Origin: Eutreptiella sp. 'Long Island Sound 2002'
Lineage: Eukaryota > Protista > Euglenida
Direction: 5' to 3'
DNA length: 64,000 nucleotides
Assembly: GCA_964036045.1 (NCBI GenBank)
Contig: OZ038378.1
Coordinates: forward strand, 174,468,001 to 174,532,000
Part shown: one piece after another, positions 5,601 through 39,600 of the stretch
Layout: each line of letters begins with the position of its first letter
How positions within the stretch are numbered: position 1 is the first letter of the stretch
The notes under the pieces: generated by a model
The model's input: the letters and a program-made list of their open reading frames with translations, nothing else
Told to the model about the DNA's origin: nothing
Database searches by the model: none
Program-made: the position numbers and the translations under genes

Positions 5601-8600
5601 TTTATTTTTCGGAGTCCATCGTATTTCTAGCATGCCTCGTGGTCCCGTGGCCTCGGTGCTTCGGAACAGGAGGCTCGCATTGAGTGAGGGTTTTGGGATG
5701 CTTGTGTCATGATGATGTATGCCACTTCTGTCAGGCACAGACCAGCTGAGCAGCACCCAATGCCTCTCATCATGTCCCCTTGTCCCCTGACGTCTCTTGG
5801 ATGCAACAGGCCCTCAGCGCCCTCCGCCCTGCACCACATACTCAAGCTCTGATCCCGATCCCAGTGCTGCAGCAAAATTCTTCAATGCACACGTTTGGCT
5901 CCACTTTTCTTTTCTTTCTTTGCTGCAAAACCACTCAGCCACACGTTTGTATTCCCATCCGACGCTTTCTCTTCTGGTTGGGGTTGTTTTTCCTCTGGTG
6001 GAGGGAGCGCAAAGAATAGTGACCAATTTGGGGGGAGTAGAGTACATTGGGATGTGCCAAAAGCCCACATATGCAGTTCTCCGAGAGCTTTTACAGCGCA
6101 CTCAAGAGGCCAGCATTTTGAGGTTTTCTGATGGTAGACGATTGGGCCTGGTTTTGGTCCAAAACCTGTGCACGGTCCACGCAAAAGTGCAGATACTCCC
6201 GTATGTGCACATTCGTCAAGATCACACATCTCCAACTGAAATTCCGCCCCCCCCCCCTCTTGCGAGAACCACGCCATTGTCAGAGCAACACCAGGTGTTG
6301 TTTCCGCAATTTCTGGAGGACCTCAGCCAGCCCCCGGCGAACCGCCGTTGGACCCCAGCCAGCCCCCGGTGAACCGCCGTTCCGCGGCCGCAGGCAAGCG
6401 CCCGGTGCATGCTGGATCGCCAGGGCTCTCCACCCCTAGCAAGCCCCAGCAGAGTCGCGGGGTGGCGGGGGCCAACGCGGCGAGCAGGGCCCCAGCCCAA
6501 GGACGTCACTGCCCAGCCGCAGCACGCGGCCTCTTCGCTTTGGACTTCACCACATCGGCTACTGTGACGTCGCCACAGGATGAGGGGCAGGGGAGAGCGT
6601 GGACGTCCCCGAGAGGATCGGAGAACCCGGGCCCACAGCGAAGACACCTGAGCCCTTGGTGCGGGTCCTTCTCTCGCCCCGTGTACACTGATGGTGAGGC
6701 TTGGGGGGCGGCACGGTGGCTCCGCCACGTCCTGCTTCCACGCTGACCCCTGTACGCACAGCGTGCAGGACCTAAATCGGCTAACCTGTTTCCGCAACTT
6801 CTGGAGCTGTGGAATTTGGCGGTTCCCTCTTGTAGTTACCTGTGAAGATCAAAATTTTCCTCTGATTTGGGGCTGGGGATTCTTTTTCAGGCATGCTGAT
6901 TACTGTTCCACTACTTTTTGCCCCTTCTTTCAGTACTTTCATCGTGCGCGCAAACGACGCCCTTGTTACACAACAGGAGGTGTTGGTTCCGTTTTTTCAG
7001 TGCTTGTACCGTCGTTCTCGTAAGGGGGGGGCTACTACCCCAGCCCGTGCTTTGTCCCAACCATACCTCGAAACCCAGCATCTCAGGCTGAGCCCCGGTC
7101 TCCCCAACTCTAAACATGCCAAACGAACTCTACTTGAGTCCCATCCAAACCTTTATCTAAATGAAAGTCGATATCTCGATGAGTTATAGATCAGCGGTTG
7201 TTGCTTTCGCCTGCAATTATGCGGCCCTTCTCAACTGAAATTGTCATGTACAGTGATTCTTCCCTTACATTGCCATTCTGCCACCACTATGTGCATCTGG
7301 AATTCCACCTATTGGGGGGTTGTCATCTCTGAACACAGCAGCACATGGTGTTCAGCTTTTGCACATTTGACAAGGAAAGCTGTTCTTGAAACCCTGACGC
7401 ATACCCTGTAGCAATGTACAATGATAAACGTGCTCAATCAAAGGATGAGACGTCCGCCATCACAGCACAAGTTTTTTTGATGCTCCGTGTCATCGCTTGG
7501 AATTTTGAATGCTATGCGCTGCGAGTTGACTGGACGGACGTTCTGTCTTCCACGCATTCGGAGCTGTGCATTTTCTGGGGCTGTGCATTTTTTCGTCGTC
7601 TGTTGCCTGTCCACCCGAACCGTGTGCTTTTGTATTGCAATAACTTGATTGCGCATCACTGCACTGCTTATCCCGCACGACGTGAAATAGAGGACTCCAA
7701 AGGGGACATCATAGGGGAGGGTTGGATCAGGGCATTGTGTTCATGGCGTGCAGGATCCATGAAGGACCCCAACATATACGCCTCGAAAAGTAATGTGCCT
7801 TGTGCCGACCATTTGTTGACGGAAATGTTTGCGACCCAAAACCCTTGGTAAACATTTGTTGGGAATCAGATAAAATGCAGTCCACTGCTGCAGTTCACTG
7901 CTGCACCGAGGCAAGGTGCGGCATCCCTGCGGAAGGTTCCCCAAAGCGGCGGGGTTGGGGGAGGTTTGTAGAATGGTGCCCACCATGACATCTGACTGAA
8001 CAGTTCTGTTGCTCTCCTGTGTGCCAACGTGTGCTTTCTGCAGCCACACCACAGTCACAACCGACAAGCAAACCTGCTGGGGGAGGGTTGTTGAGGGCCT
8101 CCTGGTCAGACCTGTCTTTGCAAAGCCATGTTGTTGCAGATGCAGCTGCTCAGTCCCATGCAGTGCACAAGGTTGTAGCAGGAACAAGGGGAGAGGAGAG
8201 GAGTATGGTTGTGTACCTGGGGCTGGTATTCATATCGCCATCCCTTGGTGTGACCAACACCAACACGTGTAGGTCTTCCAGTTCACGACTGGTGGGCCTC
8301 TTCACAAGGCTAGTGGGTGTGGCTGAACCCCCTCCCCCTCCCCTTGTCATCATTGTCGGACTTGCTTGAACTATGCTCTATTATGATAAACAGAGGAATC
8401 TTCAATTAACACCCCCAAGCATGTCCTGAATGCCTCGAGTGGCCACAACTGGCAAGCCAATAGTGGCTATCCAGTGACCCATGCCACTGGATGGGGCCTC
8501 CTCTAGGGAACACTGTGGCCGGTGCGATGGCAGTGCTGGCGCAGGTTCGGTTCAACGACCATGGTTGCCATAGGAAGCGCACAGCAATCTGCACAGAAAA

Positions 8601-10299: not shown

Positions 10300-11565
10300 T
10301 TTGGGCATATCATACACTGAGAGCTCATGTTCTTTGTCCTCACCTTCCTAAGCAAGCCAGCCCAAGAAATATTCAGCAGCCCAGAAGGACTCAAGGCAAC
10401 ACTCAGAAGTTGCTCAATGGCAATGCTCGTACACGGCACGGGGGGGGGGACTTCGCAGCGGGAATGTTTTGCCGTGGGATATTTCACGTTTCGAATTCCT
10501 GCGAAATTTCCCACACAAATTTCAGGCTGCTGTGCGAAATAAACCCGCTTCAAAATTTAGCAAAATTTCTTGTCCAACAGTTGCCTAAGCATTTGGAAAC
10601 GAGGTACGTGGAATCTGTGGGTGGAATCGGTGGGTGGGTCGCTTGGTCATGTACAATGAGGGAGCTAATATGAAGCGCCACAGCAGGACTCATCTTCAGG
10701 TGGCACAAGTCTGTTGTGCCTTTGCACAAAAGCTGAAACAGAAAAATGTTGCCATCAGTGAACAGCGGTGCATCAGAAAAATCACAGCAACCACCTGCAA
10801 GCACGGGGGAGGGATACACTTTTTTGCGCTTTTTTTGTGCTTCTAGGCGGTAGTGATTTTTTACGCTTCTTGCATTTTTTTGCGCTTTTTTGCGCTTCCT
10901 ACTTCCCTTGTCACCCTTGTTTTTCTTTGTTCCATACATGGACAAGTTCATCACACGTCCAGCAGTTGCTGAAAAAGATGAACACGAGGAAGTGCGTGGT
11001 GACAGCATGTGGTGTTGTCCATGTCCGAAGCCAGTGTGTCACAAGAGGAAATGCACTGATGATGGGCACATCACCCGGCATCACACATGAAACGCGTGAA
11101 AGGCCTTTTTGTCTAAGGTGGCCAGCAGGGCTGTGGCGCATAATAATGCTGTTATTGCGCGTAACCTTGAGCAGTGGAAATTCTACAAACGGGTCTGCAT
11201 TCTCAATCTTACCAATTTGGGTGAGATGTGCCATACTATGCGAGATTTCATGGAACTGCATTTTCCCATGGGAGATGGTGCTTTTCAAAATGAGTGGCAC
11301 CAATATTGCCAGGTGGAGAACACCACCATCGAGAGCCCTAAGGCATTGGCTACATTAATGGAGATGTTGAGGGCAGGTTCAATGCTATGTAATGGAAGCC
11401 CTCCATGCTACTCAGTGTGGCTAGCATTGCCCTGTAGGGCCTAAATGCCCCCGTGACATAGACATACAAGGGGGGCGGGACTTCGCGGCGGGAAAGTTTC
11501 GCCATGGGATATTTCGAAGCGGGTTCATTTCGCATGCAGTCCTGAATTTCCTGTGGGAAATTTCA
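10300..11565 (+). mobile_element. hAT-like transposase remnants with a duplicated terminal-type module
   Basis: FFVLTFLSKPAQEIFSSPEGLKATLRSCSM (10330-10420) resembles the decayed hAT dimerisation motif LT.P.s.A..ERsFS....K..LRS.M; further coding-like pieces at 10937-11440; repeated module at 10441-10556 and 11470-11565. Confidence 0.4.
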
Positions 11566-14141
11566 CATCGGCATTCTGTGAGCCAACCTTTTGCTGATGC
11601 TGTGTTGCTGAGTCCTAGAGGGTTGTTGTTCCTTCCTAATGAGTTGCCGGTGAGTCGTGGAGGGTTGTTGTTCCTTCGGTGGCTTGCTGCAAATTAACTC
11701 GTGGAGGGCTGCTGTCAATTCCTGGTGGCTTGCTGTTGATTGCTGGTGATTGTTGCTACTTCCGGCACGGGGGTGGGTGGGTGGGTGGGGAAGGGGGGGG
11801 GGGGGGGGGGGGCAACGTGGGATGTCAAAAAGTGCGACACAAAAAAAGCGCATAAAACGGTAGCTCTATCTATTGCTTCATCCCCCATGAAATGAAAGAA
11901 TTGGCATTTGGCATGCTCGAAGCTAGATGTGCCAAAACGGGTATGCAAGAAGCAACCATAAAGGAAGGTGAGGAGTAGGGCCTACCTCGATCATCAAGGT
12001 AAAACAGACACAGAAGCATTGAACCTTTTTGGCTTCTTGGTGCGGTTGTCAAGCTGATGACAACTCACCTGCACCCACTCACCACCCCCAAAGCGTCCTG
12101 ACACCCAAGGCAGATTTTGTCGGGTACACTAGAATATAACAAGGAAATAAACTGTCTGGGGCCTACCTTCACGGGCCCCATCCTTTGGTCTTGCCTTAAG
12201 GTTTAGCAAGGGTACAGGGGGACAAGTAGGGGGAAGCAGCAGGAGGGACCGGATCACAGGCAGAGCAGGCCACCACAGAGCCAGCACTCATGCACCTCTG
12301 TCTGTACATACTGAACTCCAAGAACCTATTGAACGCTGCAGTGGCTACGATGCCAACTTTGAGGGGCTGTGGGGAGCGTTTGAAAACCTCGAATGAGACC
12401 AAAGCGAGCTCGTTTGCACAGCAAAGGTTTTTGTGGTGCATCGGGGGAAGCAACAGCACATGGCGTACCATGGTAGCTGCGGGTCAACAAAACGAGGCAA
12501 CGAGCACCACAGGCACTGTCCAAAATGGACGAAAATCTGAAACATCTAAAACGCACAAATTTGCAACATCAAAAACTCTTTTGCCTGTGATGTTCAATAG
12601 TGATTGCAATCAACACATGTGCTTCCTCATGCAAAACTAGGCAACTTTCCCAACATCTACTTCCACAGCACTGCCATGCACATGCACCATGTGTTGCATG
12701 ATGTAAAGAAGACACCTTTGCACGCAGTTCAAAGTCTTTGTACTACCGGAGGCACTGGACCCTGTTTCAAGCCTCACGCTGCTCTAAATGAAGATCACAT
12801 CATGGGCCTAAGATGCCTCCGTGCAGGACGCCCGCACTAGGGGACACCACCGATTGGATGCTATGTTGTTGTCCCCAACAGCTTGGGGGAGTCTTGACCC
12901 TATGATGTACCACAGAGTCGTGATGCCTATGTGGGACCATTGATTAGTCATGTTGACCTCTGGGCTCAATGTGTCTGACTGTGAAGCCTTTGTTACCGCC
13001 ACACACCCCACGAAACGTTGGAATAAACGCCAGGCCATCGCCGCTATCAAGGAAGCAGAACGCATATTAGCGCAACAGCCACCAGCACATGAACTGATAC
13101 AAAATGCGGACGTTGCACTACAAGTAGTGGCAACAACAGTGTCCCTCCTTGGAAAACGCCGCAAGAAGCTGTGGAACAAACAGTCTACCCACCCATGGCA
13201 TCGCGACTTTCATGCCACCAAGAAACGACTCACTCAAGAGCTTCGGGACAATACGACAAAGTGGCTGAATACCATGCGACATTCGGCTTTGCGCAAAGAC
13301 AGCACTTTCTTCCACCTCACCAAGAAGTGACTCCGGGGCCCCCTCAAGCCAACACAAAAACAAGCAGACCCCGACCTAGTGCGGGCCCTCCTCGCTGACT
13401 TTAGTGGCAATCCTCCCTGCAATGTGCCCACCATATCCAAACTAATCAAAGAGTATATCCCAGGTCCACATCGAAGATGACCGTCCCACCTTCAATGACT
13501 TCAAACGCGCATGCCAAGGAAAACGGCGCAAGGCGGTCGGCCCGGATGGAGTACCAGATCGGCATGCTTCCGGATGAACACCTACACACACTGCATGCTG
13601 GCGTGTTAGCCATCTGGAAAGCAGGGGACATACCAACACATTGGCTGCGCTCATGAAGTAGCACTCATGAATAAAATGGGGGACCCAGAGCGCCCCAAGA
13701 ACTACCGTCCCGGGGGGGGGGGCGACTCTGTGGGTCCTAGGACGCCAACTACCCCCCCCCCCCCCCAAGGGGCCTCCGCCCAACAATTAGTTCTCAAAGG
13801 TATGAACGCAAGGAGCCAATGGGCGCCGTAGGTGCCCCGGCGCCCAATGGGGGAACGTTAGCGCACTGGGCATCTTTTTTGACCCGTGCCCCACCGGTGG
13901 CCTTTTCGGGAGTGCACTAAGGGGGCGCATTTCCCGCAGCTATTTGGGCTTTTGGCTGTATGTACTAGAGACCCATACTTTGAGATACCGGGAGCATCAT
14001 GGTGACCCCTAGCGTAGGTTTTGACTTCTGATTTTGCCCCCTTTGTCAGGGACCCCCGAGAATGCAGGGGTGAGGTAGCATTTCCGCCCTCTTTTGGGCC
14101 CCAACCTTCCGGTGCTATTGAGGAAACCGGGACAATCTCTG

Positions 14142-24800: not shown

Positions 24801-25745
24801 GCCCGAACATGGCCATGAAGGCCTCGGGTAGGGCTCGGATACTTGCGCTTGATGGGGCCCTGCACGTCTCACAACGGCCTGTCCATTTCTTGGACGTTGC
24901 TTGTGCCACCTCAAACAGCACCACCCGTTAGAAGCCTTCCTCATTCATTCACTAGTACACAGCCCCTGGTTTCGTCCTCCATTCCTCCTGGTGCCAGGGC
25001 CGCCACCCGGCAACCCGGTTACGCTCATGCTCTTGCTGGAGCTGCATCGCTGCCAGCCAGTTGAGCTGCAGCATGCACTCGTCCAACTCCACTGTCGCCA
25101 GGATTGGCGCGTGCGCGCGCGCCATGCGCGCGGGCCCATGCGGGAACCCGTGCAGCCCAAGCAACCCCAAGTCGTCCATCCTTTGTGGCTACCACCCCAT
25201 GGTGGCAGGCAGCTAGACACCGCCGCGACAGGGGAGTGCGGCCCTCTAGGGCAGGGTCGGGTTGTAGCTAGCGGGGTGCTCTTTGCCCGGCACCAGGCAC
25301 AGCCATGCCTGGCGTGCAGACAGCGGGGCCCAAGGGGGGGGGCTGGCCTGTGGTGCACACGGTGAGCGCGTGCACTCGCGCTCTACTAGCGCCTCGCGCG
25401 CTCCATGCTCCGGTGTTGGTGACTGCTCGTGCACCCGCTTGCCCAGCAGCTCCGGCCACCGGCAATGGGGTCAAGCTCTCGGCGGCTCGACGGCATTGTC
25501 ACCACCATCCTCACCACCACCCTGTGCTCGCGCCTGAGTCAGCACATGCGGTTGTCGTTATAGCGGTGGCTGTTGCGCCTAGGCCATTGATTCAGCCTCC
25601 TCATGGGGTGCCGCCGCTCCCGGACTTCCCCCCTTTGGTGGGGTTGGCTGCAGCCACACCCGCATGGTGTGCGCTCATCCCCGCGCTTGTGCCGTGTTCA
25701 TGCGGTGCCCTTTGTGGGCACCCTGGCAGCAGTGTTCCGCGCCAA
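21850..25745 (-). pseudogene. LINE ORF2, RT and C-terminal part (3' portion of an element split by the 13-kb transposon)
   Basis: GYTSIIPLK (~24600); KLRP...VYSRWA (~24380); FIKCFDLIPEAVVLG (~24160-24190); WWQATNGVLQGCSLSVILINLL (~23980-24050); TGQDAN (~23670); thumb region 23136-23600; CxxC...ETHLL..C..W knuckle (~22730-22810). Confidence 0.85.
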
Positions 25746-26391
25746 GGTACAAATCTGACATCCGAAGGTGTTAGCCTCTACCCAGGATAGGCGGTTTCAC
25801 TGTTGCAGAAAAATGACCACAAAACCCCAACAAATCCTTAGATTTCCGAAAACACCATTTTTCAACGAACACTGTTTTGGGGATTCCTCTTGTGACACCC
25901 CAACCTCCCCCAGGGTTTCACTGTCAATAGTGAAACCCTGGCGCAAGGACCCCTTTGTACTACACTCTGGGCTGTACGCAACCCCTTACACATGTCTACA
26001 TACCCGCCTTGGGATGGTGGTGGTGTTTTATTTTGCGTGGGATGGATTATATGAGCACCTAAGTGTGCTTAATAGTGCAGGGTAGTTTCAGTGTCAGCAG
26101 TGAAACTCTGCCTTGCTCCTAAGCATATGAAATAGTGTCAAGCACTGGAGCACATAGGTGCAATAACTCGATGACCGGAAGTAGTTTCACTGCTAACAGT
26201 GAAACTAGTTTTGATAATATGGTGTGTGTGTGTGTGCACTGAGAAAATGGTACCCGGCGTCAAACACTTTCACGGTTTGACGGTGAAACTATTTCCCATA
26301 TTGTGGTGTCTAGGGGTAAACAGGGAAAACGGGTAAAGTGGATTTAATTTTTGGAAGAGGCCTGTAAAGAACGGAACCGGAAATATAGCTG

Positions 26392-26465
26392 GACTGTTGT
26401 ATGGTCCAATGTTTATCACCCTTGTCTCGTACCACTAGGGGCTGGGTTCGATTCCCGGTAGATCT
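26392..26465 (+). ncRNA. Pseudo-tRNA or tRNA-derived SINE head (Glu-like 3' half) inside element E; inverted copy at ~36165-36240
   Basis: B box GGTTCGATTCCCGG preceded by GGGGCTG; A-box-like TAGTCCCATGGTTAA is clearer in the right-arm copy; the anticodon arm is degenerate. Confidence 0.55.
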
Positions 26466-27059
26466 CCCCTCCTAGGCACCATGTGGCATACCACACCAGT
26501 ACATGGTCACCAAGGAGGCATGGTAAGTGCCCCGTTGCAAGGGGGGTACACTACTAGTACTACCAAACCGGTAGTTTTCAGACATGTTTTGTAGTATATA
26601 GTTGACCATGTAGTGAGACAGCAGATTTCTAGCCCGAGTGGTAGGAAAAGTACTTCACCGGGACTTGGAGGCATCAATATGGTTGTGCCAGACCCGTCAT
26701 GTCTTTGTGGCTTCCCTGTGGTTGTGGTGCATGCAGGGACAATCGGGTGCCAAGTGAGGATCAGATTGACGATATGCCACCCCAATGTACTTGCATTCAC
26801 TCTGTTGTCCACCTCCCTCTCAGGTGGGAGGCATGCACAACACTGGATCACAAGGACTTCTTTCACTATCAATAGTGAAACCAGTTGCAGCCACTTCCTG
26901 TTAGCACCACATGTTGTCTTTCACCCTCTGCACAAGTTCCGCTAGTCTGTTATTGTGCCGGCTAACACCTTCTCACAACTAACTTTGACTGTCAACTGTG
27001 AAACCAATGGTTGTTGTCTGCTTGTTCTGATTGTATGTGATTTGCCTTTGACGCCTCAG

Positions 27060-29400
27060 AGGGCATTATGACTGACAGCGGTGCCCCCCCATTTAGTCTA
27101 CGAGACTTGTGCTCGGGGTTGTATGACGTCCTGGACCGGGCTGATATGTACCAAGACGGGGACTCACTGGTGGAGTGCGCTTTTGGGCGGAGGACCAGCT
27201 TTGACTTTTGTCGAGATAGCCCTGGAGTTGCTCCCCAATCCTCAAACAAGACGAAGTATTGCGGAACGGAAGCAGGAGTGGTCAAGTCGTGGGCCCAAGC
27301 AAGGGCTACTGCGCCTCGTGCCTGCTGAGTTCAAGCTGTTCCGCCGCATGTTGGTGCTGGCAAAGCCGATCGCAGCGGCACAAACGGTCCCTAGTACAAG
27401 GGTAATGACAGCACCGACCAAGAAACAACGGCTTGAGTTGCAGGGAAGTGGACTTGTACTCCATCGGGAACCACCATTGGTCAACCGGGTTGCCCTTGCA
27501 CAAGAGCCGATCCGCGAAGAAATGACACAAGGATGTTATGTGACATGGGCACACCAATTTTGCAAGAGCCGGTAGAGCAAAAATATCGATTGACCACGGG
27601 ACATCTCCTTGTCGTGCACTGCTGTCGCTATCCTCACAAGCCTGTCGGTGAGATTGTCGTACGCTGGGTGGCCTTCCGTAGAGAAATTGACAACATGGGT
27701 CAAGGACGTGGCACTGCATATGCGGGACTCGGTCACTGAGTTTTTGACTGTTGTGCGGGACTTGGGATCGGATCGACTGCCCCCTGGTCTTCTTCGCTGT
27801 CCGTTGGATACTCGCCGGGGCAACCCAGGACTTCATCATGGCAGCCGTACGGGTTATGGGACATCAATGTCACCAAGACGGCGGGATTGGGGGACGTGTT
27901 GGTCCGGTTATTGCAAGACAATCTTGGTAACCGGAACCCAGTGAAGGTATTACTTTGTGACATGAACAAATGGTGGAGGGTTGCAAAGGTTGTGTACAAT
28001 AGGGAGCATGCTGCTTCCCTAGTACGCGGTGCGCTCCGTGACATATGCCCTGTCTATGGGATTTGGCACGCATACAAGGCGTGTGTGTTTGCTTTATACA
28101 AGGCTTTTTCACCTTTTTTTTATCTGCCTAGAGTATGATTGCTTCTCAATGGATGCAACTGCCACACGGGTGTACCAGTACCCCCCTCTCCTTGTCTTGG
28201 AGAGGCTCATTCTCTCGTGCTACCTTGCGTATCCCGCACCGAAGTCTCAATTGGACCGTGGCTTCCGGAGTTTCACCGTTGACAATGAAACTTCCCTATG
28301 GCAGGAGCGCTAGGAGGCCCTGCGAGAATTATTGCAGGCTTATATTCGTGTTGTCTTGCAGCTAGGGATAATCGTGCGTGACTGCTCCTGGAGACATTGG
28401 GCCTGTGGCACCCGTGTTGCAGCACGCAAGGTTTTAGAATGCAGCCTGTTTGTGCTGCGGAAGATCGTGACGGCAACTATAAAAACACGTTCCGCATTGC
28501 TCTCCTTCTGTGGAGTTCCTTCCATGATGCATTGCCAAGTAATGCACTTGTCGAAGAGAAAGGGGAATCGATGCTCTGTCATCTTGTGAAAGCATCGACG
28601 CATGATCTCAGTGCTACCACACTAGAGCAATATGAGGCCTGTTTTTAGCCATCAGAAAGGCTCGACAAGGAACCACATTCCAGCAAAAGCCCCATATAAC
28701 ATTGGGATGCATCCAAATGGTGCAAGGCACGTTGCAAAATCTGTTGCACTGGTTGACTTCATGCACGGCCCCATCTATAGATATGAGACCGGATGAGATG
28801 GAGGATAATCCTAAGGCCGCTTGTGTAACAGGTACCAACATTTGGCCAGACAGCTTCAAATTTCCACCTGCCCTTATGGACTCAACAAGCCTGGTTGAGT
28901 CGGAGTATTTTCTACTGCACCAAAGCCTACACACTCTTTTTTACCGCTTTGGCAAGGCGTTTTGACAAGGCCAACCGCCGGGCTGTAGCTGACCAGATGA
29001 TCCAGCACCAGCAACCGCCCTGTGGTCTTGACTAAAAATCCTTTTTTGATGACTATGCAGGAACAGCTACACTCCTACGCGGCATGCTACCACGTGATGC
29101 TACGGCGTTGGGAATGCTCATTTGGGAAAAGGTACCCAGAAAACGCAAAAGAGCAGGTGGCGTCAGTGACCAAAACAAGTCTCACTCAAACTCCGGAGAT
29201 GATGTCCACCTTGATGCCGTGGTACCTGAGGCACCACACGCCACGCGGACGGCCACCACGTACCAGCTCCCGCAGCGGCAAATCATTCCATTGCTATTGG
29301 GCGGTCAAGACCCGTTGAGGCTCTTTGCGAAGCTGCCCAACAACGACGAGAAAATTGCCATCTCGATCTACAACAAGCACGCGGAGGAGATGCTGAAGGA
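27060..29400 (+). pseudogene. Putative transposase core of element E (RNase H-like; DUF6589/Academ-like pattern, tentative); inverted copy at ~33400-35560
   Basis: WQPYGLWDINVTKTAGLGDVL...VKVLLCDMNKWWR...ICPVYGIWHAYK...VEEKGES; the hhhhxD followed ~30 aa later by PxxGxWH layout is reminiscent of that family; frameshifted in both copies. Confidence 0.4.
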
Positions 29401-30322
29401 CCTCTAGACAGCGGAGGAGCAAGTAGCCATTGGCGTTGGGTGACAATGAGGTGCGCTATGTTGATTGTGAAAGCGATGGCGATGACTGTATATTAGTTGG
29501 GTAGGGCTGGAGATGCTCCGGAACACGGATGTATAGTGGCCAATGGACCTGTCATACCACCAATGGTTGCGGTTCCACACTGTGTCCACGTACCCCGGGT
29601 TTGCTGATGCCTGTGTGTCCAGTGCAAATGCCATCAGGACGGGGGACAGGCAATGACTTTCACTGTCAACTGTGAAACACAAGGTGAAGCAGGCTGGAAT
29701 GTATCACAGGGGGATTATGCAATGGTGAGTAGATCATAATGACACGAATAGCATATATTCACATAGCACTTTCACTGTTGATAGTGAAACCCTTCGGAAA
29801 CAAGGGTCCGAAATGGAGGACAGTGCATACTCACTGGCATCCAAGGCAACGTTCTGGCAATGTGGTACGTGACGCTTGTGGTTCTCCCCCCCTCCCTGCC
29901 TTATGTTGGTCTGTTGCCCATGTGCATCACATTCAAAAGGTGCCAGCATGATATCATTCATGGTAACATTGCACCAGTGCAAGATTGATATGCACCTTTA
30001 TTGTGCATCCTTTCGCAGAAGGCACCAGTGCAAGTAAATGAGAATTAGGTGTCACGATGTAGCAGCACGAGGGTGCACAATGTCAGTTTCAGGACCTGCT
30101 GGTTGCTCTGACTCTTGTGTTCCATAGCAAATTCATAAATTTGAAAATAGCAAGAACAAGGTGAACCCAGTATCTGGCGGGATAGTGACAAACGAAAACT
30201 AGTGCCCTGTTGATAACCAAAGACACATGCTGCTTTGAACGAAATTGCCTATAACACACTTTCACTGTTGACAGTGAACCACCGTTCCAAAAGGTTTCTC
30301 GGACAGGCAATTTCATGGTGTT

Positions 30323-32325
30323 TTGGGCTGTTTTTCTCCTACTTGTGGCTCCTCCTTGCTCTTTGCAAGATCCAGTAAAACGGAGGACCCCCGTGATCCG
30401 CATTCGGAGCCCGAGCATCCGGACTGGGCAGTCGGCCACACAACGGAATCTGGTGAAGTGCCTGCAGATGAGTCGGCCGTTAGTGGCGTTGATGGTGAAA
30501 GACAAGAAGATGACAAACAGGAGCGGAGGTTTGCCGTTGAAGTAGATGCTGGTGGTGAGGAAAGTGGTTTGGGTGAGGAGGAGGAGGAGAGTTCTAAGCC
30601 TGAAGAGGAGGAAGAGCAGGACTTTGAGGAGGAGCAGGAGGACCGGACCAAAATGAAATCGCGACCGTGCATCTTGGAGGGTGCAAACGTAGAGGCCCAT
30701 CAGGTCAAAAAATACGTTCATGTCAGCAAGCTGATCTGGGATGAGGAGCTGAAGTACGGTCGGGTCCCGACGAGTACAGCGCCCTCGCCTCGCAAGACTC
30801 CGTCGCAGTGTCGCCCACCGAGGGCTAATCGAGGAGGTCCGCGGTTGTCTGCTGGACTGAGCAGGTATATGCCGCATCTAATGCAGCCTTTTGTATTTGC
30901 AAAGTGGGATCTGGCATGTCTGATCACCGATTCTTTTACTGTTGACAGCGAAAGTCTCCTGTCCTGTGGCTGCTGTCTGCAGGAGACATCCGGTTGGTGC
31001 TCGGCAGACAACACATGTGCGCCATCGTCAAAGAACTCTTGCTCGCACTGACATCACCGATTGAGGAGGGGGGTCAAGCTAAAGCTAAAAGTGATGTACC
31101 CGAAGAAATACGATTCATCTAAGGCGTTATACCTCGTGAACACACACCAGCGGAAATATGCCGCCTTCTCGCCGGCGTGCACCGAAGGGCTTAGCGGGAA
31201 TTCTATGAGACTACTATCTCTGAGGTGGCTGTTAGATTTCTGCAACACTGTCCTAAAATAGTGAAGAGGAACGGCGAGAAGTACGCGACACCCCATGCTG
31301 GTGAGATCTGGGAAGTGGTCACAGATGTTGGGGTGCCATACAAGGAGTATATTGGCATTGACACAACGGTATGTGACAAGCAAATGTGCAATGAAAGGGC
31401 CGTATCTCTAGTGAGTTTCACTGTCAACATTGAAACTCGCTCCGTCTTGCTCCTTAGCGTACCAAGGCTGTCAATGAGTGGAGGGGTTTGGCACACCTCT
31501 GTGGGATGATACTAGATGTTGGCGACAAGTTCACCTAGGCTATTGCGGCGTTCGACGAGAAGAAGTGTTTTAGTCATCCTGCCTTGAAGGAAAGTGCTGG
31601 GCTACCGCGGCCGTACTGTTTGAAGTTCGTCAACTGGGTGGCAAGTGCAGGGTACATGATCAACACGAATATAGTCTCCCGGAAGCTGAGAAACCCGAAG
31701 TGCTGTATCGCGTACGGAGTCATGTGTTCTGCCCAAGCAATCCACAGATCCACGACAGCCAACGTATGCCTGTTTCCGTCTTGCAGCATACTCACGTTCG
31801 TTGTTTCCTGAGTCCGCTGCCGTTGCATTGTTTCACTGTCAACAGTGAAACTCCTTCGTGTCTTAGTGCAATGCAGGAACTGAAGCCACCGTGTAAATGC
31901 TGTGCAACGCAGTGAAGTGGGATGAGAGGTATTGGGCATTGGGAGCGACAGGACACCAGGCAGCGAGGTACCGGCTGGGGACTGGTCAACCGACACGTGA
32001 AACTTTGCAGAGGGCAAAGTTGTGGCAAGACTCCTTGTGCGCTGACACACGCAAGTCGCTGCGTGAAGCGCTGTGTGCGGAGGAGACTGAGGGTGTTAGT
32101 GGGGGAGCTGCATTGGAGCTGGATCAAGTGTGCACTGCTTCCTTTGCCGGAACCCAGGGGACGATCCACTTCACTGGCGACATGGGCAAGCATGTGTCTG
32201 CGAAGGCCCACCTCTTGTACATTGAGGTTCCAAAAGGAAGTGAGACATCACATCTGCCGCCGGGGTTCGGAAGGAAGCTTGCCGCTCAAGGGGTCCCAAC
32301 AATCTTGTTCGGTCCAAACGCTAGA
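30323..32325 (+). pseudogene. Central unique coding region of element E (acidic tract, Cys-rich segment, unassigned domains)
   Basis: ORFs 30323-31051 (EEEEESSKPEEEEEQDFEEEQE; CGCC...C...C) and 31897-32325 read as natural protein and are linked by interrupted frames. Confidence 0.5.
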
Positions 32326-32326
32326 A

Positions 32327-35300
32327 CTCCGCTCCCGTTTGTCATTTTCTTGTCTTTCACCATCAACGCCACCGACACGCAACTCATCGGCTGGCACTTC
32401 ACCAGATTCCGTTGTGTGGCCGACTGCCCAGTCCGGATGCTCGGGCTCCACATGCTGATCACGGGGGTCCTCCGTTTTACTGGATCCTGCAAAGAGCAAG
32501 GAGGAGCCACAAGTAGGAGAAAAACAGCCCAAAACACCATGAAATTGCCTGTCCGAGGACCTTTTGGAACGGTGGTTCATTGTCAACAGTGAAAGTGTGT
32601 TATAGGCAATTTCGTTCAAAGCAGCATGTGTCTTTGGTTATCAACAGGGCACTAGTTTTCGTTTGTCACTATCACGCCAGATACTGGGTTCACCTTGTTC
32701 TTGCTATTTTCAAATTTATGAATTTGCCATGGAACACAAGAGTGAGAGCAACCAGCAGGTCCTGAAACTGACATTGTGCACCCTCGTGCTGCTACATCGT
32801 GACACCTACTTCTCATTTACCTGCACTTGTGCCTTCTACCAAGGGATGCACAATAAAGGTGCATATTAATCTTGCACTGGTGCAATGCTACCATGAATGA
32901 TATCATGCTGGTACCTTTATAATGCGATGTACATGGACAAATTCCCACAACAGGCAGGGGGGGGGGGGGGGGGGCTCAAGCGTCATGTACCACACGCGCA
33001 GAACGTTGCACTGGATGCAAGTGAGCGTATGCACTGTCCCCTATTTTGGACCCTTGTTTTCCAAGGCTTTCATTGTCAACAGTGAAAGTGCTTTGTGAAT
33101 ATATGCTATTCGTGTCATTATAATCTACTCACCATTGCATAATCCCCCTGTGATACATTCCAGCCTGCTTCACCTTGTGTTTCACAGTTGACAGTGAAAG
33201 TCATTGCCTGTCCCCCGTCCTGATGGCAATTACACACAGGCATCAGCAAACCCGGGGTACAATATGGAACCGCAACCATTGGCCGTATGACAAGTCCACT
33301 AGCCACTATACATCTGTGTTCCGGAGCATTGCCAGCCCTACCCAACTAAGACACGGTCATCGTCGTCGCTTTCAGAATCAACATAGCACAACTAATTGTC
33401 ACCCAATGCCACGGCATCATGGTTGACATCATCTCCGGAGTTTGAGTGAGACCCGTTTTGGTCACCAACGCCACCTGCTCTTTTGCGTTTTCTGGGTACC
33501 TTTTCCCAAATGGGCATTCCCAACACCGTAGCATCTCGTGGTAGCACGCCGCATAGGCGTGCATCTGTTCCGCATAGTCATCAAAGAAGGAAGTTTAGTC
33601 AAGACCACAGGGCGGTTGCTGGTGCTGGATCATGTGGTCAGCTACAGCCAGTCAAACGCCTTGCCAGAGAGCTGCAAAAGAGTGTGTAGGCTTTGGTGCA
33701 GTAGGAAATACTGCGACTGAAGCAGGCTTGTTGAGTCCTAAGGGCAGGTGGAAATTTGAAGCTGTCTGGCCAAATGTTGGTACCTGTTACACAAGCGGCC
33801 TTAGGATTATCCTCCATCTCATCCGGTCTCATATCTATAGAAGGGGCCGTGCATGAAGTCAACCAGTGCAACAGATTTTGCAACCCACCTTCCACCATTT
33901 GGATACATCCCAATGTTATATGGGGCTTTTGCTGGAATGTGGTTCCTTGTCGAGCCTTTCTGATGGCTAAAAACTGGGACTCATATTGCTCTAATGTGGT
34001 AGCACTGAGATCATGCGTCGATGCTTTCACAAGATGACAGAGCATCGATTCCCCTTTCTCTTCAACACGTGCATTACCTGGCAATGCATCATGGAAGGAA
34101 CTCCACAGAAGGAGAGCAATGCGGAACGTGTTTTTATAGTTGCCGTCACTACGTGTCGGGCCGATCTTCCGCAGCACAAACAGGCTGCATTCTAAAGCCT
34201 TGCGTGCTGCAACACGGGTGCCACAGGCCCAATGTCTCCAGGAGCAGTCACGCACGATTATCCCTAGCTGCAAGACAACAAGAATATAAGCCTGCAATAA
34301 TTCTCGTAGGGCCTCCTAGCGCTCCTGCCACAGGGAAGTTTCATTGTCAACGGTGAAACTCCGGAAGCCACGGTCGAATTGAGACTTTGGTGCGGGATAC
34401 GCAAGGTAGCACGAGAGAATGAGCCTCTCCAAGACAAGGAGAGGGGGGTACTGGTACACCCGTGTGGTAGTTGGATCCATTAAGAAGCAGCCATACTCTA
34501 GGCAGATAAAAAAAAGGTGAAAAAGCCTTGTATAAAGCAAACACACACGCCTTGTATGCGTGCCAAATCCCATAGACAGGGCATATGTCACGGAGCGCAC
34601 CGCGTACTAGGGAAGCAGCATGCTCCCTATTGTACACAACCTTTGCAACCCTCCACCATTTGTTCATGTCACAAAGTAATACCTTCACTGGGTTCCGGTT
34701 ACCAAGATTGTCTTGCAATAACCGGACCAACACGTCCCCCAATCCCGCCGTCTTGGTGACATTGATGTCCCATAACCCGTACGGCTGCCATGATGAAGTC
34801 CTGGGGTTGCCCCGGCGAGTATCCAACGGACAGCGAAGAAGACCAGGGGGCAGTCGATCCGATCCCAAGTCCCGCACAACAGTCAAAAACTCAGTGACCG
34901 AGTCCCGCATATGCAGTGCCACGTCCTTGACCCATGCTGTCAATTTCTCTACGGAAGGCCACCCAGCGTACGACAATCTCACCGACAGGCTTGTGAGGAT
35001 AGCGACAGCAGTGCACGACAAGGAGATGTCCCGTGGTCAATCGATATTTTTGCTCTACCGGCTCTTGCAAAATTGGTGTGCCCATGTCACATAACATCCT
35101 TGTGTCATTTCTTCGCGGATCCGCTCTTGTGCAAGGGCAACCCGGTTGGCCAATGGTGGTTCCCGATGGAGTACAAGTCCACTTCCCTGCAACTCAAGCC
35201 GTTGTTCCTTGGTCGGTGCTGTCATTACCCTTGTACTGGGGACCGTTTGTGCCGCTGCGATCGGCTTTGCCAGCACCAACATGCGGCGGAACAGCTTGAA

Positions 35301-36879
35301 CTCAGCAGGCACGAGGCGCAGTAGCCCTTGCTTGGGCCCACGACTTGACCAGTCCTGCTTCCGTTCCGCAATACTTCGTCTTGTTTGAGGATTGGGGAGC
35401 AACTCCAGGGCTATCTCGACAAAAGTCAAAGCTGGTCCTCCGCCCAAAAGCGCACTCCACCAGTGAGTCCCCGTCTTGGTACATATCAGCCCGGTCCAGG
35501 ACGTCATACAACCCCGAGCACAAGTCTCGTAGACTGAATGGGGGGGCACCGCTGTCAGTCATAATGCCCTCTGAGGCGTCAAAGGCAAATCACATACAGA
35601 CAGAACAAGCATACAACAACCATTGGTTTCCCAATTGGCAATGAAAGTTAGTTGTGAGAAGGTGTTAGGTGGCACAATAACAGACTAGCGGAACTTGTGC
35701 AGAGGGTGAAAGACAACATGTGGTGCTAACAGGAAGTGGCTGCAAGTGGTTTCACTGTTGATAGTGAAAGAAGTCCTTGTGATCCAGTGCTGTGCATGCC
35801 TCCCACCTGAGAGGGAGGTGGACAACAGAGTGAATGCAAGTACATTGGGGTGGCACATCGTCAATAAGATCTTCACTTGGCACCCCACTGTCCCCGCATG
35901 CACCACAACCACAGGGAAGCCACAAAGACATGATCGGTGTGGTACAACTATATTGATGCCTCCAAGTCCTGGTGAAGTACTTTTCCTACCACTAGGGCTA
36001 GAAATCTGCTGTCTCACTACATGGTCAACTATATACTACAAAACATGTCTGAAAACTACCGGTTTGGTAGTACTAGTAGTGTACCCCCCCTGCAACGGGG
36101 CACTTACCATGCCTCCTTGGTGACCGTGTACTGGTGTGGTATGCCACATGGTGCCTAGGAGGGGGGATCTACCGGGAATCGAACCCAGCCCCCAGTGGTA
36201 CGAGACAAGGGTGTTAACCATGGGACTAGACGACAATCCAGCTATCTTTCCGGTTCCGTTCTTTACAGGCCTCTTCCAAAAATTAAATCCACTTTACCCG
36301 TTTTCCCTGTTTACCCCTAGACACCACAATATGGGAAATAGTTTCACCGTCAAACCGTGAAAGTGTTTGACGCCGGGTACCGGTCCTCAGTAGGCCCACA
36401 CGCCACAGTATCACAACTAGTTTCACTGTCAACAGTGAAACTACTTCCGGTCATCGAGTTGTTGCACCTATGTGCTCCAGTGCTTGACACTATTTCATAT
36501 GCTCAGGAGCAAGGCAGAGTTTCACTGCTGACACTGAAACTACCCTGCACTATTAAGCACACTTAGGTGCTCATATAATCCATCCCACGCAAAATAAGCC
36601 ACCAGCACCATCCCAAGGCGGGTATGTAGACAGGTGTAACGGGTTGCGTACAGCCCAGAGTGTAGTACAAAGGGGTCCTTGCGCCAGGGTTTCACTATTG
36701 ACAGTGAAACCCTGGGGGAGGTTGGGGTGTCACAAGAGGAATCCCCAAAACAGTGTTCGTTGAAAAATGGTGTTTTCGGAAATCTAAGGATTTGTTGGGG
36801 TTTTGTGGTCATTTTTCTGCAACAGTGAAACCGCCTATCCCGGGTGGAGGCCAACACCTTCGGATGTCAGATTTGCACC
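32327..36879 (-). repeat. Inverted duplication of 25746-30528 (giant palindrome arms around a 1.8 kb spacer)
   Basis: Continuous reverse-complement match with near-identical ORFs on opposite strands (e.g. 27068-27328+ vs 35302-35562-); the right arm lacks ~210 bp corresponding to ~29222-29432. Confidence 0.96.
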
Positions 36880-37235
36880 CCAAGAGGGGGGGGGGGGGGC
36901 TGGCCTGTGGTGCACACGGTGAGCGCGTGCACTCGCGCTCTACTAGCGCCTAGCGCGCTCCATGCTCCGCTGTTGGTGACTGCTCGCGCACCGGCTTGGC
37001 CAACACCTCTTGCCACCGGTAATGGGGTCAAGCTCTCGGCGGCTCGTCGGCTTTGTCACCACCATCCTCACCACCACCCTGTGCTTGCGCTTGGGTGAGC
37101 ACATGCGGCTATCGTTGTAGCAGTGGTTGTTGCGCCTAGGCCATTGGTCCGGCCTCCTCATAGGGTACAGCCGCTCCCGGACTTGCCCCCTTTGGTGGGG
37201 TTGGCTGCAGCCACACCCGCAAGGCGTGCGCTGAT
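36880..37235 (+). repeat. Direct copy of LINE segment 25330-25679
   Basis: CCAAG(A)GGGG..GCTGGCCTGTGGTGCACACGGTGAGCGCG...GCAGCCACACCCGCA matches in the same orientation. Confidence 0.93.
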
Positions 37236-37283
37236 CTGTGGACCACAAGAGGCGGAAGTTGGTTCCGAAGCAACGCGAAAAGG

Positions 37284-37871
37284 ATGAACTGGAGGGGACG
37301 ACAAAGTCATGGAAGAACAATTGTGCAAAGGCCGTTGTTGAACACAGGCAAGGAAATTAGCATCGGAGTCTCCTTGACAGCCCATTCCGAACCACCCCCA
37401 CTCCAAAAAACCGGACTGTCTGAGGAGCTTTCACTGTTGACTATGAAAGCTCAGGACAGTGTCGGTCATGAAGCTGCATCATCCAGTGTTGCTAATCCTG
37501 CGGTTCATGTGCCCCCAACTGACCCAGAACCTGCTTTCAATGCTGTCAGAGCCGATGCAAAGCCAGCTCCTGCGAAGGCAACAGGGAACAAGAAGGCGAA
37601 GTCCAAGACCACTGCCAAGACGGGTGCAAAGGTGCAGACTGAGCACACCACCCTCACTCAGATGGACCCGGAGGCTAGGGTGGATGTAGACAGTAATGAC
37701 AAGGCCCGGCAGCAGGCAATTGCAGCGCAGATCGAGGCTACCAACAATGCGGGTTCTGGCAGACGAGGAGCTCCGGGGCTGAAACGCAAACCCAAAGCAC
37801 ATGCCGTGACCATCCCCAGCGTGGCTCAGCTTGAGCAGGCTTCCCTGAGGACCCGCAATGCAAAGCAATAG
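37284..37871 (+). pseudogene. Lys/Ala-rich C-terminal coding segment of element E
   Basis: Open frame ...KPAPAKATGNKKAKSKTTAK...LKRKPKAH...RTRNAKQ*; same strand as the left arm and carries the element's palindrome. Confidence 0.5.
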
Positions 37872-38806
37872 GCTCAAATGGGAGGACCTGTCGGTTCTGC
37901 TTTTTTGAGAACTGCTTTTGTTTGGACTGTTGCTGCCCTAACAACGTCTGCTGGTCTGCTGGGTTATCACAATGTACTTTCACTGTCAAATGTGAAACAC
38001 ACTGCCATAATGACACCTGTGCCCGAAATGCCCGAAACCAATGTTATATTTTTTCCCGTCACTGCACTACTTTGTGATGACCTGCTGCTCAGCTTTGTCC
38101 AGAGGTGCACTATATTGGATTCTACTTTTGTTTTCCATCAGACAAGAACAATCATTTATAAACCATAAATTGTACCCTTCATAAACCACAAATTGTACCC
38201 TTCAGCCTTTGTCTTGGACTGCACAGACATATGCCACTGTCCTTGTGTATTTGCACTGTACTTCAGTGCAGCAGCCGCGTATTGTTTATCTTCTATCTGA
38301 GCTTCACCAGCAAGGTCATATATCCGGTCTGTTGTTTCCACGTTGCACCTCGGGCTGCAGTATAAAACTTTGTTTTACTGTTAACTGTGAACGTCTCTCC
38401 CTTGTTGATGTCATTTGCCAGTGCCAATGTTTTTCATCGCGAATATGCTTCTGCACATGCAGCTACACTGTGTGCACAAGTGCCCTACTTGTGTTTTGTG
38501 TTGCTCCTTTGCATACACTCGTTTGTCACAAGGGGAAGTTGTTTGTGGCTGCATGTGGTCCACAGCCGCAGATGGGATGGAATGGGGGAGGGGGGGGTCT
38601 GGGAATGTTGTCCATCACACCTCAATGCTTCCATGTCAGTTGCTGCTTCACTGTTGACAGTGAAACATTATAAAATATGGCCCCCACAGTGCAATTTCTG
38701 GAAATTGAATTTTTATGTGAGTTTCACTGTTGGCCACAAAGGCCACCAGTGAAACTTTTGCCCGGTTTCGGGGTCCCCGCCGGCCCGGGATGTCAAGTTT
38801 GTACCC

Positions 38807-39600
38807 CCAAGGCCCCCCCCCGGGCTCTAGGGAGAGGGCACACAGCCTGAGCGGCTCCAAGTTGCGAGGGGCGGATGGACAATGGCGGGGTGTCAATGCC
38901 CCCCCCCTCCCCCCGGCAAGGGGATGTTCAGGGCGAGACAGGGAGCTAAGCTCCTGCGGGAAGTCATGGGGGGGGGGGGGCTGCCACCCTCCACGCTGGC
39001 AGCGGGTTTCGGCCGCATTTCGGTGGACGTGGCGGCAGCGCGGCAAGCGGCAGGGGGCTCCCCCATCTATTCCCCACCACCTCCTCCACTCCTTCCCCCG
39101 CCCCTACGGGATGCGGTAGCAGAGGAGGCCGCGCTGGCGCTAGCCGACGGCGAGCTACAGAACGCCGTCGGCAATGACCCCCCCCCCCGCCACCACAAGC
39201 ACAGGGAGCGCGCTCAAAGAGGGGCCCCATGCAAACTGTGTGTGACGCGCACAAAGCACCCGCGTGCAAGGTGTGCCGGGGGCAAGGCGGGGTGCGGCAC
39301 TCCTGCTCCCGGCACCACGAGGGACACCCTCTATTGGTGCGAAACGTTGGGGGGGGGGGGGGGGGGGGGGGCTGCACGGCAGCACACACTGTTTGGGGCG
39401 GGAGTAGCCTAAGCCCTCGCCCCTGGGACCCCCCCCCCCGTGGCAACCTAGCGCAACGAAGGATAGGGGTGTCGAGGTTAGGTATCTTCCCCTTCCACCC
39501 TCCCAAGGCCCTCATGCGGGTCGCCCGTGCACCGCGTGGACACCAAATTAGCGCCCGGCCTTTGTGAGGCCATCTCCTCATACCCCCCAAGGGTGGCACG
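38807..39600 (-). pseudogene. 5' (APE-region) part of the LINE that continues at 25745
   Basis: GC-rich LINE-like sequence; LPVLVVAGG resembles the APE PVLVxGDFN motif; it joins the left part across CCAAGG to read ...LEPGGGPW|RGTLLPG. Confidence 0.55.

Follow-up and report, generated by a model that had tools for sequence, protein, structure and literature searches.

The two-gene transposon and its repeated palindrome

The window analyzed here is a 64,000-nucleotide stretch of the genome of the euglenid Eutreptiella sp. 'Long Island Sound 2002' (assembly GCA_964036045.1, contig OZ038378.1, positions 174,468,001 to 174,532,000 of the forward strand). Positions 25746 to 38811 (plus strand) hold a rearranged and decayed copy of a two-gene transposon with terminal inverted repeats (TIRs), along which a 22-bp palindromic word, GTTTCACTGT-YR-ACAGTGAAAC, recurs as two 10-nt arms around a 2-nt center. 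This motif is confined to the element, was near-perfect in the ancestral state, avoids the conserved coding blocks, and is replaced by other words, partly at homologous places, in related families. The element is collinear with copies of the same family at two other loci, L003 (8094 to 16284, 8.2 kb) and L009 (7870 to 15707, 7.8 kb), which put the canonical length at 7.8 to 8.2 kb. In the window, the left 4.6 kb is present a second time in inverted orientation at 32327 to 36884 (minus strand), and features duplicated there are given below as mirrors.

Two collinear sets of conserved coding blocks were recovered by tblastx between L003 and L006, a related element in the same assembly. The first set, gene 1, survives in the window as a remnant at 27041 to 29450 on the plus strand (mirror at about 33385 to 35589 on the minus strand; about 9375 to 11574 in L003) and is presumed to encode a DUF6589-like transposase. 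Pfam searches returned repeated weak matches to DUF6589 (E values of 0.15 and 0.02) and none above threshold, and the neighbors of gene 1 by ESM features were DUF6589 clusters at 0.94, with 191 to 197 features in common. The second set, gene 2, is a pseudogene in the window. Its 5' part at 30449 to 32318 (plus strand) comprises an acidic region, an N-terminal exon, an exon encoding the sequence GGQH, and further exons, and its 3' part at 37239 to 37871 (plus strand) is a Lys/Ala-rich tail that runs to the stop codon; the whole gene lies at about 12309 to 15370 in L003. The window gene carries a frameshift at 30763/30765 plus an in-frame stop. An exhaustive search with the GGQH exon recovered 54 proteins, mostly pieces of open reading frames (ORFs) together with a few longer, transcript-like forms (P0045 and P0070), and the family consensus reads LGGQH(I/M)xAA ... 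TPxxxCRLAAGxHQxxQ. No significant Pfam family was found in 10 ORF pieces from the window, 10 pieces from L003, 10 homologs of gene 2, or the ORFs of L009 and of L010, a metagenome scaffold described below. Introns were called from GT...AG ends, frame changes, and conservation between families.

Scanning with the pattern GTTTCACTG-WYRW-CAGTGAAAC and using 100 shuffles as a control gave 16 matches in the window at up to two mismatches, all within 25915 to 38666, where the shuffles led to an expectation of 0.00. At up to three mismatches there were 21 matches, against 0 in Markov shuffles, and at up to four mismatches over the 18 arm positions there were 24, from 25915 to 38645 and all inside the element. 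The total rises to 27 element sites once degenerate copies are counted (26267 and 36341, with a 5-nt center, and 35626, with five mismatches). The sole other match in the window, at 60980, has four mismatches and is G+C-rich; the scan at up to four mismatches found no credible copy of the word in the other 51 kb. At L001, L002, L003, and L009, each copy of the word likewise falls within a stretch that matches the element. An earlier, sequence-only reading of this stretch had listed these positions and had confined full copies to the element, and both statements held: 24 of the listed copies match at up to four mismatches, and the rest are degenerate, split, or half-sites. Its count of about 28 copies in a single transposon was inflated by the inverted duplication, since mirror duplicates make up 10 of the 27 sites in the window; roughly 18 independent ones belong to the canonical element, besides its terminal half-sites.

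The center of the palindrome is CA or TG, once TA (CG in L006), and is always a pyrimidine-purine step. What had been described as an asymmetric 4-nt core is this 2-nt center within a 10+10 palindrome. The state of the center is constant per site across copies, and an origin of TCAA and TTGA by CpG decay of a TCGA center was rejected for that reason.

The sites are distributed over the whole canonical length. Four form a left sub-terminal cluster at 25915 to 26289 (25915, 26085, 26184, and 26267; mirrors at 36689, 36519, 36420, and 36341), and two at 26860 to 27004 (26860 and 26983; mirrors at 35749 and 35626) lie upstream of gene 1. One site, at 28270 to 28291 (mirror at 34338), falls within the gene 1 reading frame, where it reads RSFTVDNET, and is the only one that is probably coding. 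Three more occupy the spacer between the genes at 29657 to 30280 (29657, 29769, and 30259; mirrors at 33179, 33067, and 32574). Within gene 2, the site at 30933 to 30954 lies in intron 1 and is homologous to L003 12794, which falls within GTATGT...TCTAG, the site at 31415 to 31436 lies in intron 2, which in L009 has GTATGT on its 5' side, and a perfect copy at 31830 to 31851 stands between conserved gene 2 blocks. The 3' part holds four sites at 37428 to 38666 (37428, 37977, 38372, and 38645). At the left end, the half-site GTTTCACTG at 25794 to 25802 (mirror at 36823 to 36831) is 47 nt inside the terminus and is kept in L001, L003, and L009. At the right end there is a split palindrome at 38721 to 38755, consisting of GTTTCACTG, about 17 nt, and CAGTGAAAC, whose outer half-site lies about 56 nt in from the true right end (38811) and 48 nt in from the GTACC at 38803. 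A half-site had been reported about 30 bp inside each TIR; it is present at both ends, at a distance of 47 to 48 nt from the terminus.

Identity between copies was 0.84 to 0.87 in the motif arms, 0.85 to 0.87 in the coding blocks conserved between families, and 0.82 to 0.86 in other DNA. Since these values are equal, the sampled copies are evidently dead and drifting neutrally. The best-preserved copy is L009, which has 17 sites with zero to two mismatches and a gene 1 ORF of 469 residues that represents a cluster of 35 sequences. The per-site majority over three to six copies agrees with GTTTCACTGT-NN-ACAGTGAAAC at 327 of 340 positions. Because both L009 and this majority are near-perfect, the active ancestor is taken to have carried near-perfect palindromes. 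In L013, a fragment that is 67% identical, 17 of 18 arm bases are kept at the homologous site, a retention that suggests selection between lineages. L009 lacks, at 12152, a segment of 573 bp (L003 12169 to 12742) in which gene 2 has its acidic region and its conserved N-terminal exon, and its palindromes are still perfect; this copy may represent a subfamily that was amplified recently and relies on gene 2 supplied in trans.

The window copy is collinear with L003 and L009 over 25746 to 32318 and again over 37239 to 38811, and the block between them (32327 to 37236) stands in for 585 bp of the canonical element. Past the position equivalent to L003 14174, the sequence passes into the inverted left 4.6 kb, which ends in a complete canonical terminus, CTTGGGGTGC..., on the minus strand, then into a 352-bp copy of flanking DNA, A' (36885 to 37236, plus strand), and resumes the element 585 bp further on. 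A' is a 91% identical copy of the G+C-rich DNA left of the element, the 346-bp stretch at 25334 to 25679 recurring at 36891 to 37236. The inverted copies (25746 to 30528 and 32327 to 36879, 4.6 to 4.8 kb) are 95.5% identical in their outer part and 90.5% in their inner part. Exact short contigs from four sequencing runs in two studies span the junction at 32327, and exact contigs from three of those runs (X1, X3, and X4), again from two studies, span the junction at 37236/37237. Because the arms are 5 to 10% diverged and exact contigs bridge both junctions, the rearrangement is real, and an assembly fold-back artifact was ruled out as the source of the giant palindrome. Aberrant transposition or captured filler DNA may have given rise to it. 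Runs of 14 to 18 G adjoin repeat boundaries at 32938 to 32976, 36885 to 36898, and 39347 to 39368, and many spurious contig joints occur there.

The left terminus in the window, GGTACAAATCTGACATCC (25746 to 25764, plus strand), is without the CTTGGGG that opens the TIR elsewhere, and the right terminus, ...GTACCCCCAAG (38788 to 38811, minus strand), corresponds to the canonical TIR CTTGGGGGTAC.... Intact members of the family read CTTGGGGGTAC...GTACCCCCAAG from end to end, so that the CCAAG following the right end is TIR sequence rather than target sequence. The target site duplication (TSD) is 5 bp long (TTCGC in L009 and CTAAA in L003). The left end of the window copy reads GCGCCAAG|GTAC (25742 to 25750), with the complementary CCAAG in place of CTTGGGG. 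The left flank repeat A opens with CCCAAG (25329 to 25334, compared with 36879 to 36884), which are element-terminus bases with no element adjoining; they resemble a footprint and could be relevant to the origin of the rearrangement.

The family is multicopy. A protein search with one ORF piece matched only ORF fragments of one ENA assembly, and a second search returned at least 25 fragments. Between 5 and 19% of the 31-mers of the element were present in runs labeled as another organism (X4) and in two estuary metagenomes (X6 and X9). The contigs of X4 are exact at both rearrangement junctions, so that its label, 'organism B', may be a second name for the same strain. Other mobile elements occur in the neighboring DNA: L009 has a reverse transcriptase ORF of more than 1700 residues at 1 to 2597, and L013 has an ORF with a hAT dimerization domain at 11486 to 12031.

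Coding context and related families

The word leaves two of the three frames open on both strands, giving peptides such as VSLSTVK and FTVNSE, and the third reads FHCQQ followed by a stop. Because two frames are free of stops on either strand, palindromes that are not coding are nevertheless traversed by open frames, and an open frame across such a palindrome is mostly non-coding, which should serve as a warning for annotation. Several copies had been thought to lie in frame in the coding sequence, and this applies to one of the four, that at 28270 (mirror at 34338), which is probably coding; the other three peptides fall in introns or upstream of gene 1. TSFTINSETS (26860) is upstream of gene 1, as both 26860 and 26983 precede the called start of the L009 ORF and the point (L003 9486) where conservation between families sets in. 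DSFTVDSESL (30933) falls in gene 2 intron 1, where the first palindrome of L003 lies in a stop-containing frame of the upstream exon, and VSFTVNIETR (31415) falls in intron 2, on either side of which the exon blocks of L009 are in different frames. In many ORF pieces of the gene 2 family the last residues are (Q/T)V(C/Y), as translation into a GTATGT donor would give.

Most probably, the site at 28270 is translated as part of a variable linker in gene 1. The 469-residue ORF of L009 is open across the equivalent site, the TAG in the window and the TGA in L003 are independent changes of one TGG, and gene 1 of L006 keeps an open frame across the palindrome that it has at the homologous linker. 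The gene 1 homolog of L010 (33% identity, E value of 5e-23) spans this segment with a single one-residue gap and is motif-free there, giving 28 versus 27 residues in a linker whose length varies from 21 to 28. Because the motif-free homolog differs in length by no more than one residue, the word at this site arose by substitution and not by insertion.

Related elements use palindromes of a different sequence. L006, in which gene 2 is 33% identical and the gene 1 blocks are 22 to 50% identical, carries the word TTCTACTGC-YR-GCAGTAGAA in 11 copies at up to three mismatches and 14 at up to four, with 0 in shuffles. The window word has no credible copy in L006 (one chance-level match at up to three mismatches), and the L006 word is absent from L003 and from the window. 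The L006 sites are found in the homologous coding linker of gene 1, in gene 2 introns 1 and 2, in the spacer between the genes, and in the 3' part. About 6 kb of foreign DNA (1116 to 7189), probably a nested insertion, interrupts gene 1 of L006.

The third family is represented by L010, a 6.36-kb metagenome scaffold from another organism with a complete 6.2-kb element at 93 to 6304. This element has perfect 35-nt TIRs that open with CTTGG, no obvious TSD at its ends, and homologs of both genes, with gene 1 on the strand opposite to gene 2. It contains 12 copies, in both orientations, of the quasi-palindrome TTACG(A/C)C-5 nt-G(G/T)CGTAA. Two GT-AG introns of gene 2, each 45 to 50 nt long, are nearly filled by one copy apiece; another copy is in the coding sequence of gene 1, and a half-site makes up the inner end of the TIR.

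Gene 2 introns 1 and 2 hold the family motif in all three families, and the places that are in part shared comprise the sub-terminal DNA, the spacer between the genes, and these two introns. None of the 17 sites of L003 overlaps a block conserved between families, where about five would be expected at random (the blocks make up 29% of the element). With its TIRs, its homologs of genes 1 and 2, and an array that takes in the ends, the intergenic spacer, and introns, the window element belongs with the other two in one type of two-gene transposon with a family-specific palindrome. The comparison of motif arrays was made without the contigs of P0028, P0045, P0057, and P0070, which are too short or transcript-like, and no further relatives emerged when metagenome contigs were scanned with blocks of the two genes.

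A candidate reader of the palindromes

The design and the places of the palindromes are conserved between families, and the word itself is family-specific but uniform within a family, which argues for a cis-acting site with a co-evolving trans-acting factor; the use of the same word at all sites of a family likewise argues for one trans-acting reader rather than for local hairpins. The palindromes are probably family-specific dimer-binding sites of a protein encoded by the element itself, most likely the product of gene 2. The word would then be the private recognition site of a cut-and-paste transposon that encodes gene 1 and gene 2, here called the 'GGQH' family. Its active ancestor would have carried about 18 sites, namely, 4 in the left sub-terminal DNA, 2 upstream of gene 1, 1 in the gene 1 linker, 3 between the genes, 4 between conserved gene 2 blocks (3 of them in two GT-AG introns), and 4 in the 3' part, as well as a half-site inside each TIR region. 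Because the dyad symmetry, the flexible pyrimidine-purine center, and the terminal half-sites fit such a scheme, the protein is proposed to occupy internal sites as a dimer, with a monomer bound beside each end, and the terminal half-sites would tie it to the element ends. Binding might mark the whole element as 'self', either for the assembly or bridging of its ends during transposition or as a chromatin shield against silencing. The binding itself, the identity of the protein, and the purpose are in each case what we infer from this arrangement.

Structure prediction suggests what kind of protein gene 2 may encode. The protein modeled was residues 100 to 290 of P0070, a homolog that is 34% identical, not the product of this element itself (AlphaFold 2 [AF2]; predicted local distance difference test score [pLDDT] of 74). 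The model has the order b-b-a-b-b-a-b-a, which is that of the ParB N-domain, followed by a helical domain. The best PDB matches in Foldseek were ParB and Noc, at weak E values of 0.6 to 1.4. When Foldseek's top-ranked PDB chains were aligned with VIA-align, 5k5d_C came first (Z score of 4.3, root mean square deviation of 2.5 Å, 69 residues), followed by 7bnk_A (Z score of 3.5) and 6sdk_A (Z score of 3.2, 27% identity), all three of which are ParB N-domains. A wide VIA search matched PadC (Z score of 3.2 over 104 residues) and the SopB DNA-binding domain (Z score of 3.2, residues 124 to 180), and the ESM feature neighbors of gene 2 included ParB_N and DUF6551 clusters at 0.93 to 0.95. Weak as these similarities are, the modeled gene 2 product is probably ParB-like. 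The N-terminal exon fragments, which MAFFT misplaced, were omitted from the gene 2 alignment. A first AF2 model (residues 100 to 345 of P0045) was discarded as uninformative: a shallow N-terminal alignment had produced long helices that dominated both fold searches.

Several results weigh against gene 2 as a ParB-like reader of these sites. All of the ParB Z scores are below 5, the Foldseek E values lie between 0.6 and 1.4, and the wide VIA search gave nothing past a Z score of 3.2. The Atlas shape search with the gene 2 model returned nothing, PDB sequence searches with single pieces and with a profile found nothing for gene 2, and NCBIfam and Pfam searches over all 39 members of the gene 2 alignment (A3) found no ParB. 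GGQH stands at the strand-helix junction where ParB has the arginine motif GERR, which binds CTP, a position assigned by topology and not by a significant alignment. The sites of L009 are perfect without the N-terminal exons of gene 2, although that copy could be served in trans. The comparison between families covers three families only, and in these both genes accompany the motif equally, which leaves the two candidates undistinguished. A protein-binding site, for either the transposase or a partner protein, had been among the earlier suggestions; it remains the best reading in view of the sister families with other words at partly homologous places, and it still leaves these two proteins unseparated.

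An unlikely yet serious alternative is that the gene 1 transposase binds the palindromes, with internal copies as extra landing pads or regulators and with another job for gene 2. The half-site is equidistant inside both ends, full sites cluster sub-terminally, the half-site of L010 is part of the TIR, and gene 1 is found in all three families, all of which would suit a transposase. Transposase sites are usually concentrated at the ends, however, whereas two-thirds of those here are internal and occupy positions shared across families that include gene 2 introns, and Pfam identified no DNA-binding domain in gene 1. Hairpins in RNA or DNA, whether as intron structures for an unusual host splicing, in transcript processing, or as cruciforms, are a good deal less probable still. 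The word can form a 9- to 10-bp stem on either strand and several sites lie midway in short introns, but about half of the sites are sub-terminal or intergenic, one is in coding sequence, and the introns have ordinary GT...AG ends; moreover, hairpins need pairing, not identity, and each family has one sequence.

Two further proposals of the sequence-only reading fared worse. If a site-specific recombinase or resolvase acted on the palindromes, an asymmetric core would set the direction; this would account for the non-palindromic center (CA or TG) and, were the inverted duplication taken as one of its products, for a large inversion-type rearrangement in the same element. The breakpoints at 30528/32327, 36884, and 37236/37237, however, lie 185 to 270 bp from any copy of the motif, the orientation of the center is fixed per site across copies, and Pfam found no recombinase-like gene in the ORFs of the element, which makes this very improbable. 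The remaining idea, a small selfish palindrome that spread by insertion, sometimes in frame, in the manner of Rickettsia palindromic elements or of a miniature inverted-repeat transposable element, is the hardest to credit and has largely been refuted already. There are many near-identical short copies with both orientations of the center, one of them in an open reading frame. Yet no clean-ended presence/absence polymorphism or empty site was seen among the six aligned copies, the only gap (in the window versus L003 12752) being a ragged 17-nt deletion; the homolog without the motif is not shorter, the word at the coding site came about by substitution, site positions are common to families with different words, and there are no copies outside the element in the window or at L001, L002, L003, and L009.

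Comparison with known systems

If the palindromes are read by a ParB-like product of gene 2, there are parallels in the bacterial ParB-parS, Noc-NBS, and KorB systems, in which a dimeric protein with a ParB N-domain recognizes a palindrome (there, 14 to 16 bp); Noc sites, like those described here, are scattered over large DNA. The half-sites had been noted to match those of parS, and the 7-mers GTTTCAC and GTGAAAC are indeed identical. Because the words of the sister families (TTCTACTG... and TTACGCC...) are unrelated, the resemblance is probably coincidental, and the 7-mers lie 8 bp apart and do not form the abutting 16-bp palindrome of parS. The present system also differs from bacterial ParB-parS in having GGQH for GERR, a eukaryotic host, and no ParA partner: no ParA-type ATPase was found by Pfam, and only two genes are conserved between the families. 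A eukaryotic counterpart of parS and ParB is a tentative proposal, in which a ParB-fold protein would load at about 18 private palindromes, maintained from end to end and even within dedicated short introns and a coding linker, and coat or bridge the element, with word and protein co-evolving as a lineage-specific code of self-recognition. Such a code, if real, could serve the pairing of ends, the tethering of excised DNA, or shielding from silencing.

Among eukaryotic transposons, the TnpA protein of En/Spm (CACTA) is a second element-encoded protein that binds 12-bp sub-terminal motifs, partly inverted, and helps to join the ends, and Ac/Ds carries sub-terminal hexamers; in both En/Spm and Ac/Ds the motifs lie within a few hundred base pairs of each end. 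The element described here falls outside the CACTA/En-Spm group (including Plavaka), given termini of CTTGGGGGTAC..., no Pfam transposase match, and weak DUF6589 similarity only: its ends open with CTTGG... and not CACTA, and its TSD is 5 bp and not 3 bp. A literature search found no paper that describes such palindrome arrays in euglenid or other transposons, and very few transposons (VANDAL/VANC and En/Spm TnpA) are known to encode a sequence-specific reader of their own non-coding DNA.

In function, VANDAL/VANC and En/Spm TnpA come closest to the present system. In the VANDAL elements of Arabidopsis, the element-encoded accessory protein VANC, which counteracts silencing, binds short motifs along non-coding DNA (PMC5735166, PMC10398659). 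As here, the motifs are element-wide, and related families have different proteins and different motifs. VANDALs are, however, Mutator-like, VANC is unrelated to gene 2, and VANC recognizes short motifs that lack palindromic symmetry and frequently form tandem arrays, whereas the sites described here are dispersed 22-bp palindromes at conserved positions that include introns and one coding site, with a function that is predicted. In gene content, the nearest cases are the ParB-like accessory genes of algal transposons, reported as PAG3 of red-algal Plavaka elements, which has adjacent repeats and for which the authors propose binding to its own element (bioRxiv 10.1101/2025.02.11.637652), and, in brown algae, in Sola1-1_Ec32 of Ectocarpus (PMC12477816). 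In those cases the ParB-like part is fused to a 2-oxoglutarate (2OG) oxygenase or a DNA methyltransferase, the repeats are tandem and gene-adjacent rather than element-wide palindromes, and the transposase superfamilies differ. Neither enzymatic domain was detected in the gene 2 ORFs of L003, L009, L010, and L004, where a remote homolog of either could have escaped detection, and the likeness to ParB is weak.

The window itself holds a decayed and rearranged copy, and it is the system behind the motif that is of interest. The algal ParB-like accessory genes were reported in 2025 without defined target sites, whereas here the putative target is explicit: a long palindrome, different for every family and almost without mismatches in its young copies, at conserved places that include introns barely larger than the site. 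This would provide a testable protein-DNA code and a way to study how a mobile element distinguishes its own copies from those of its relatives.

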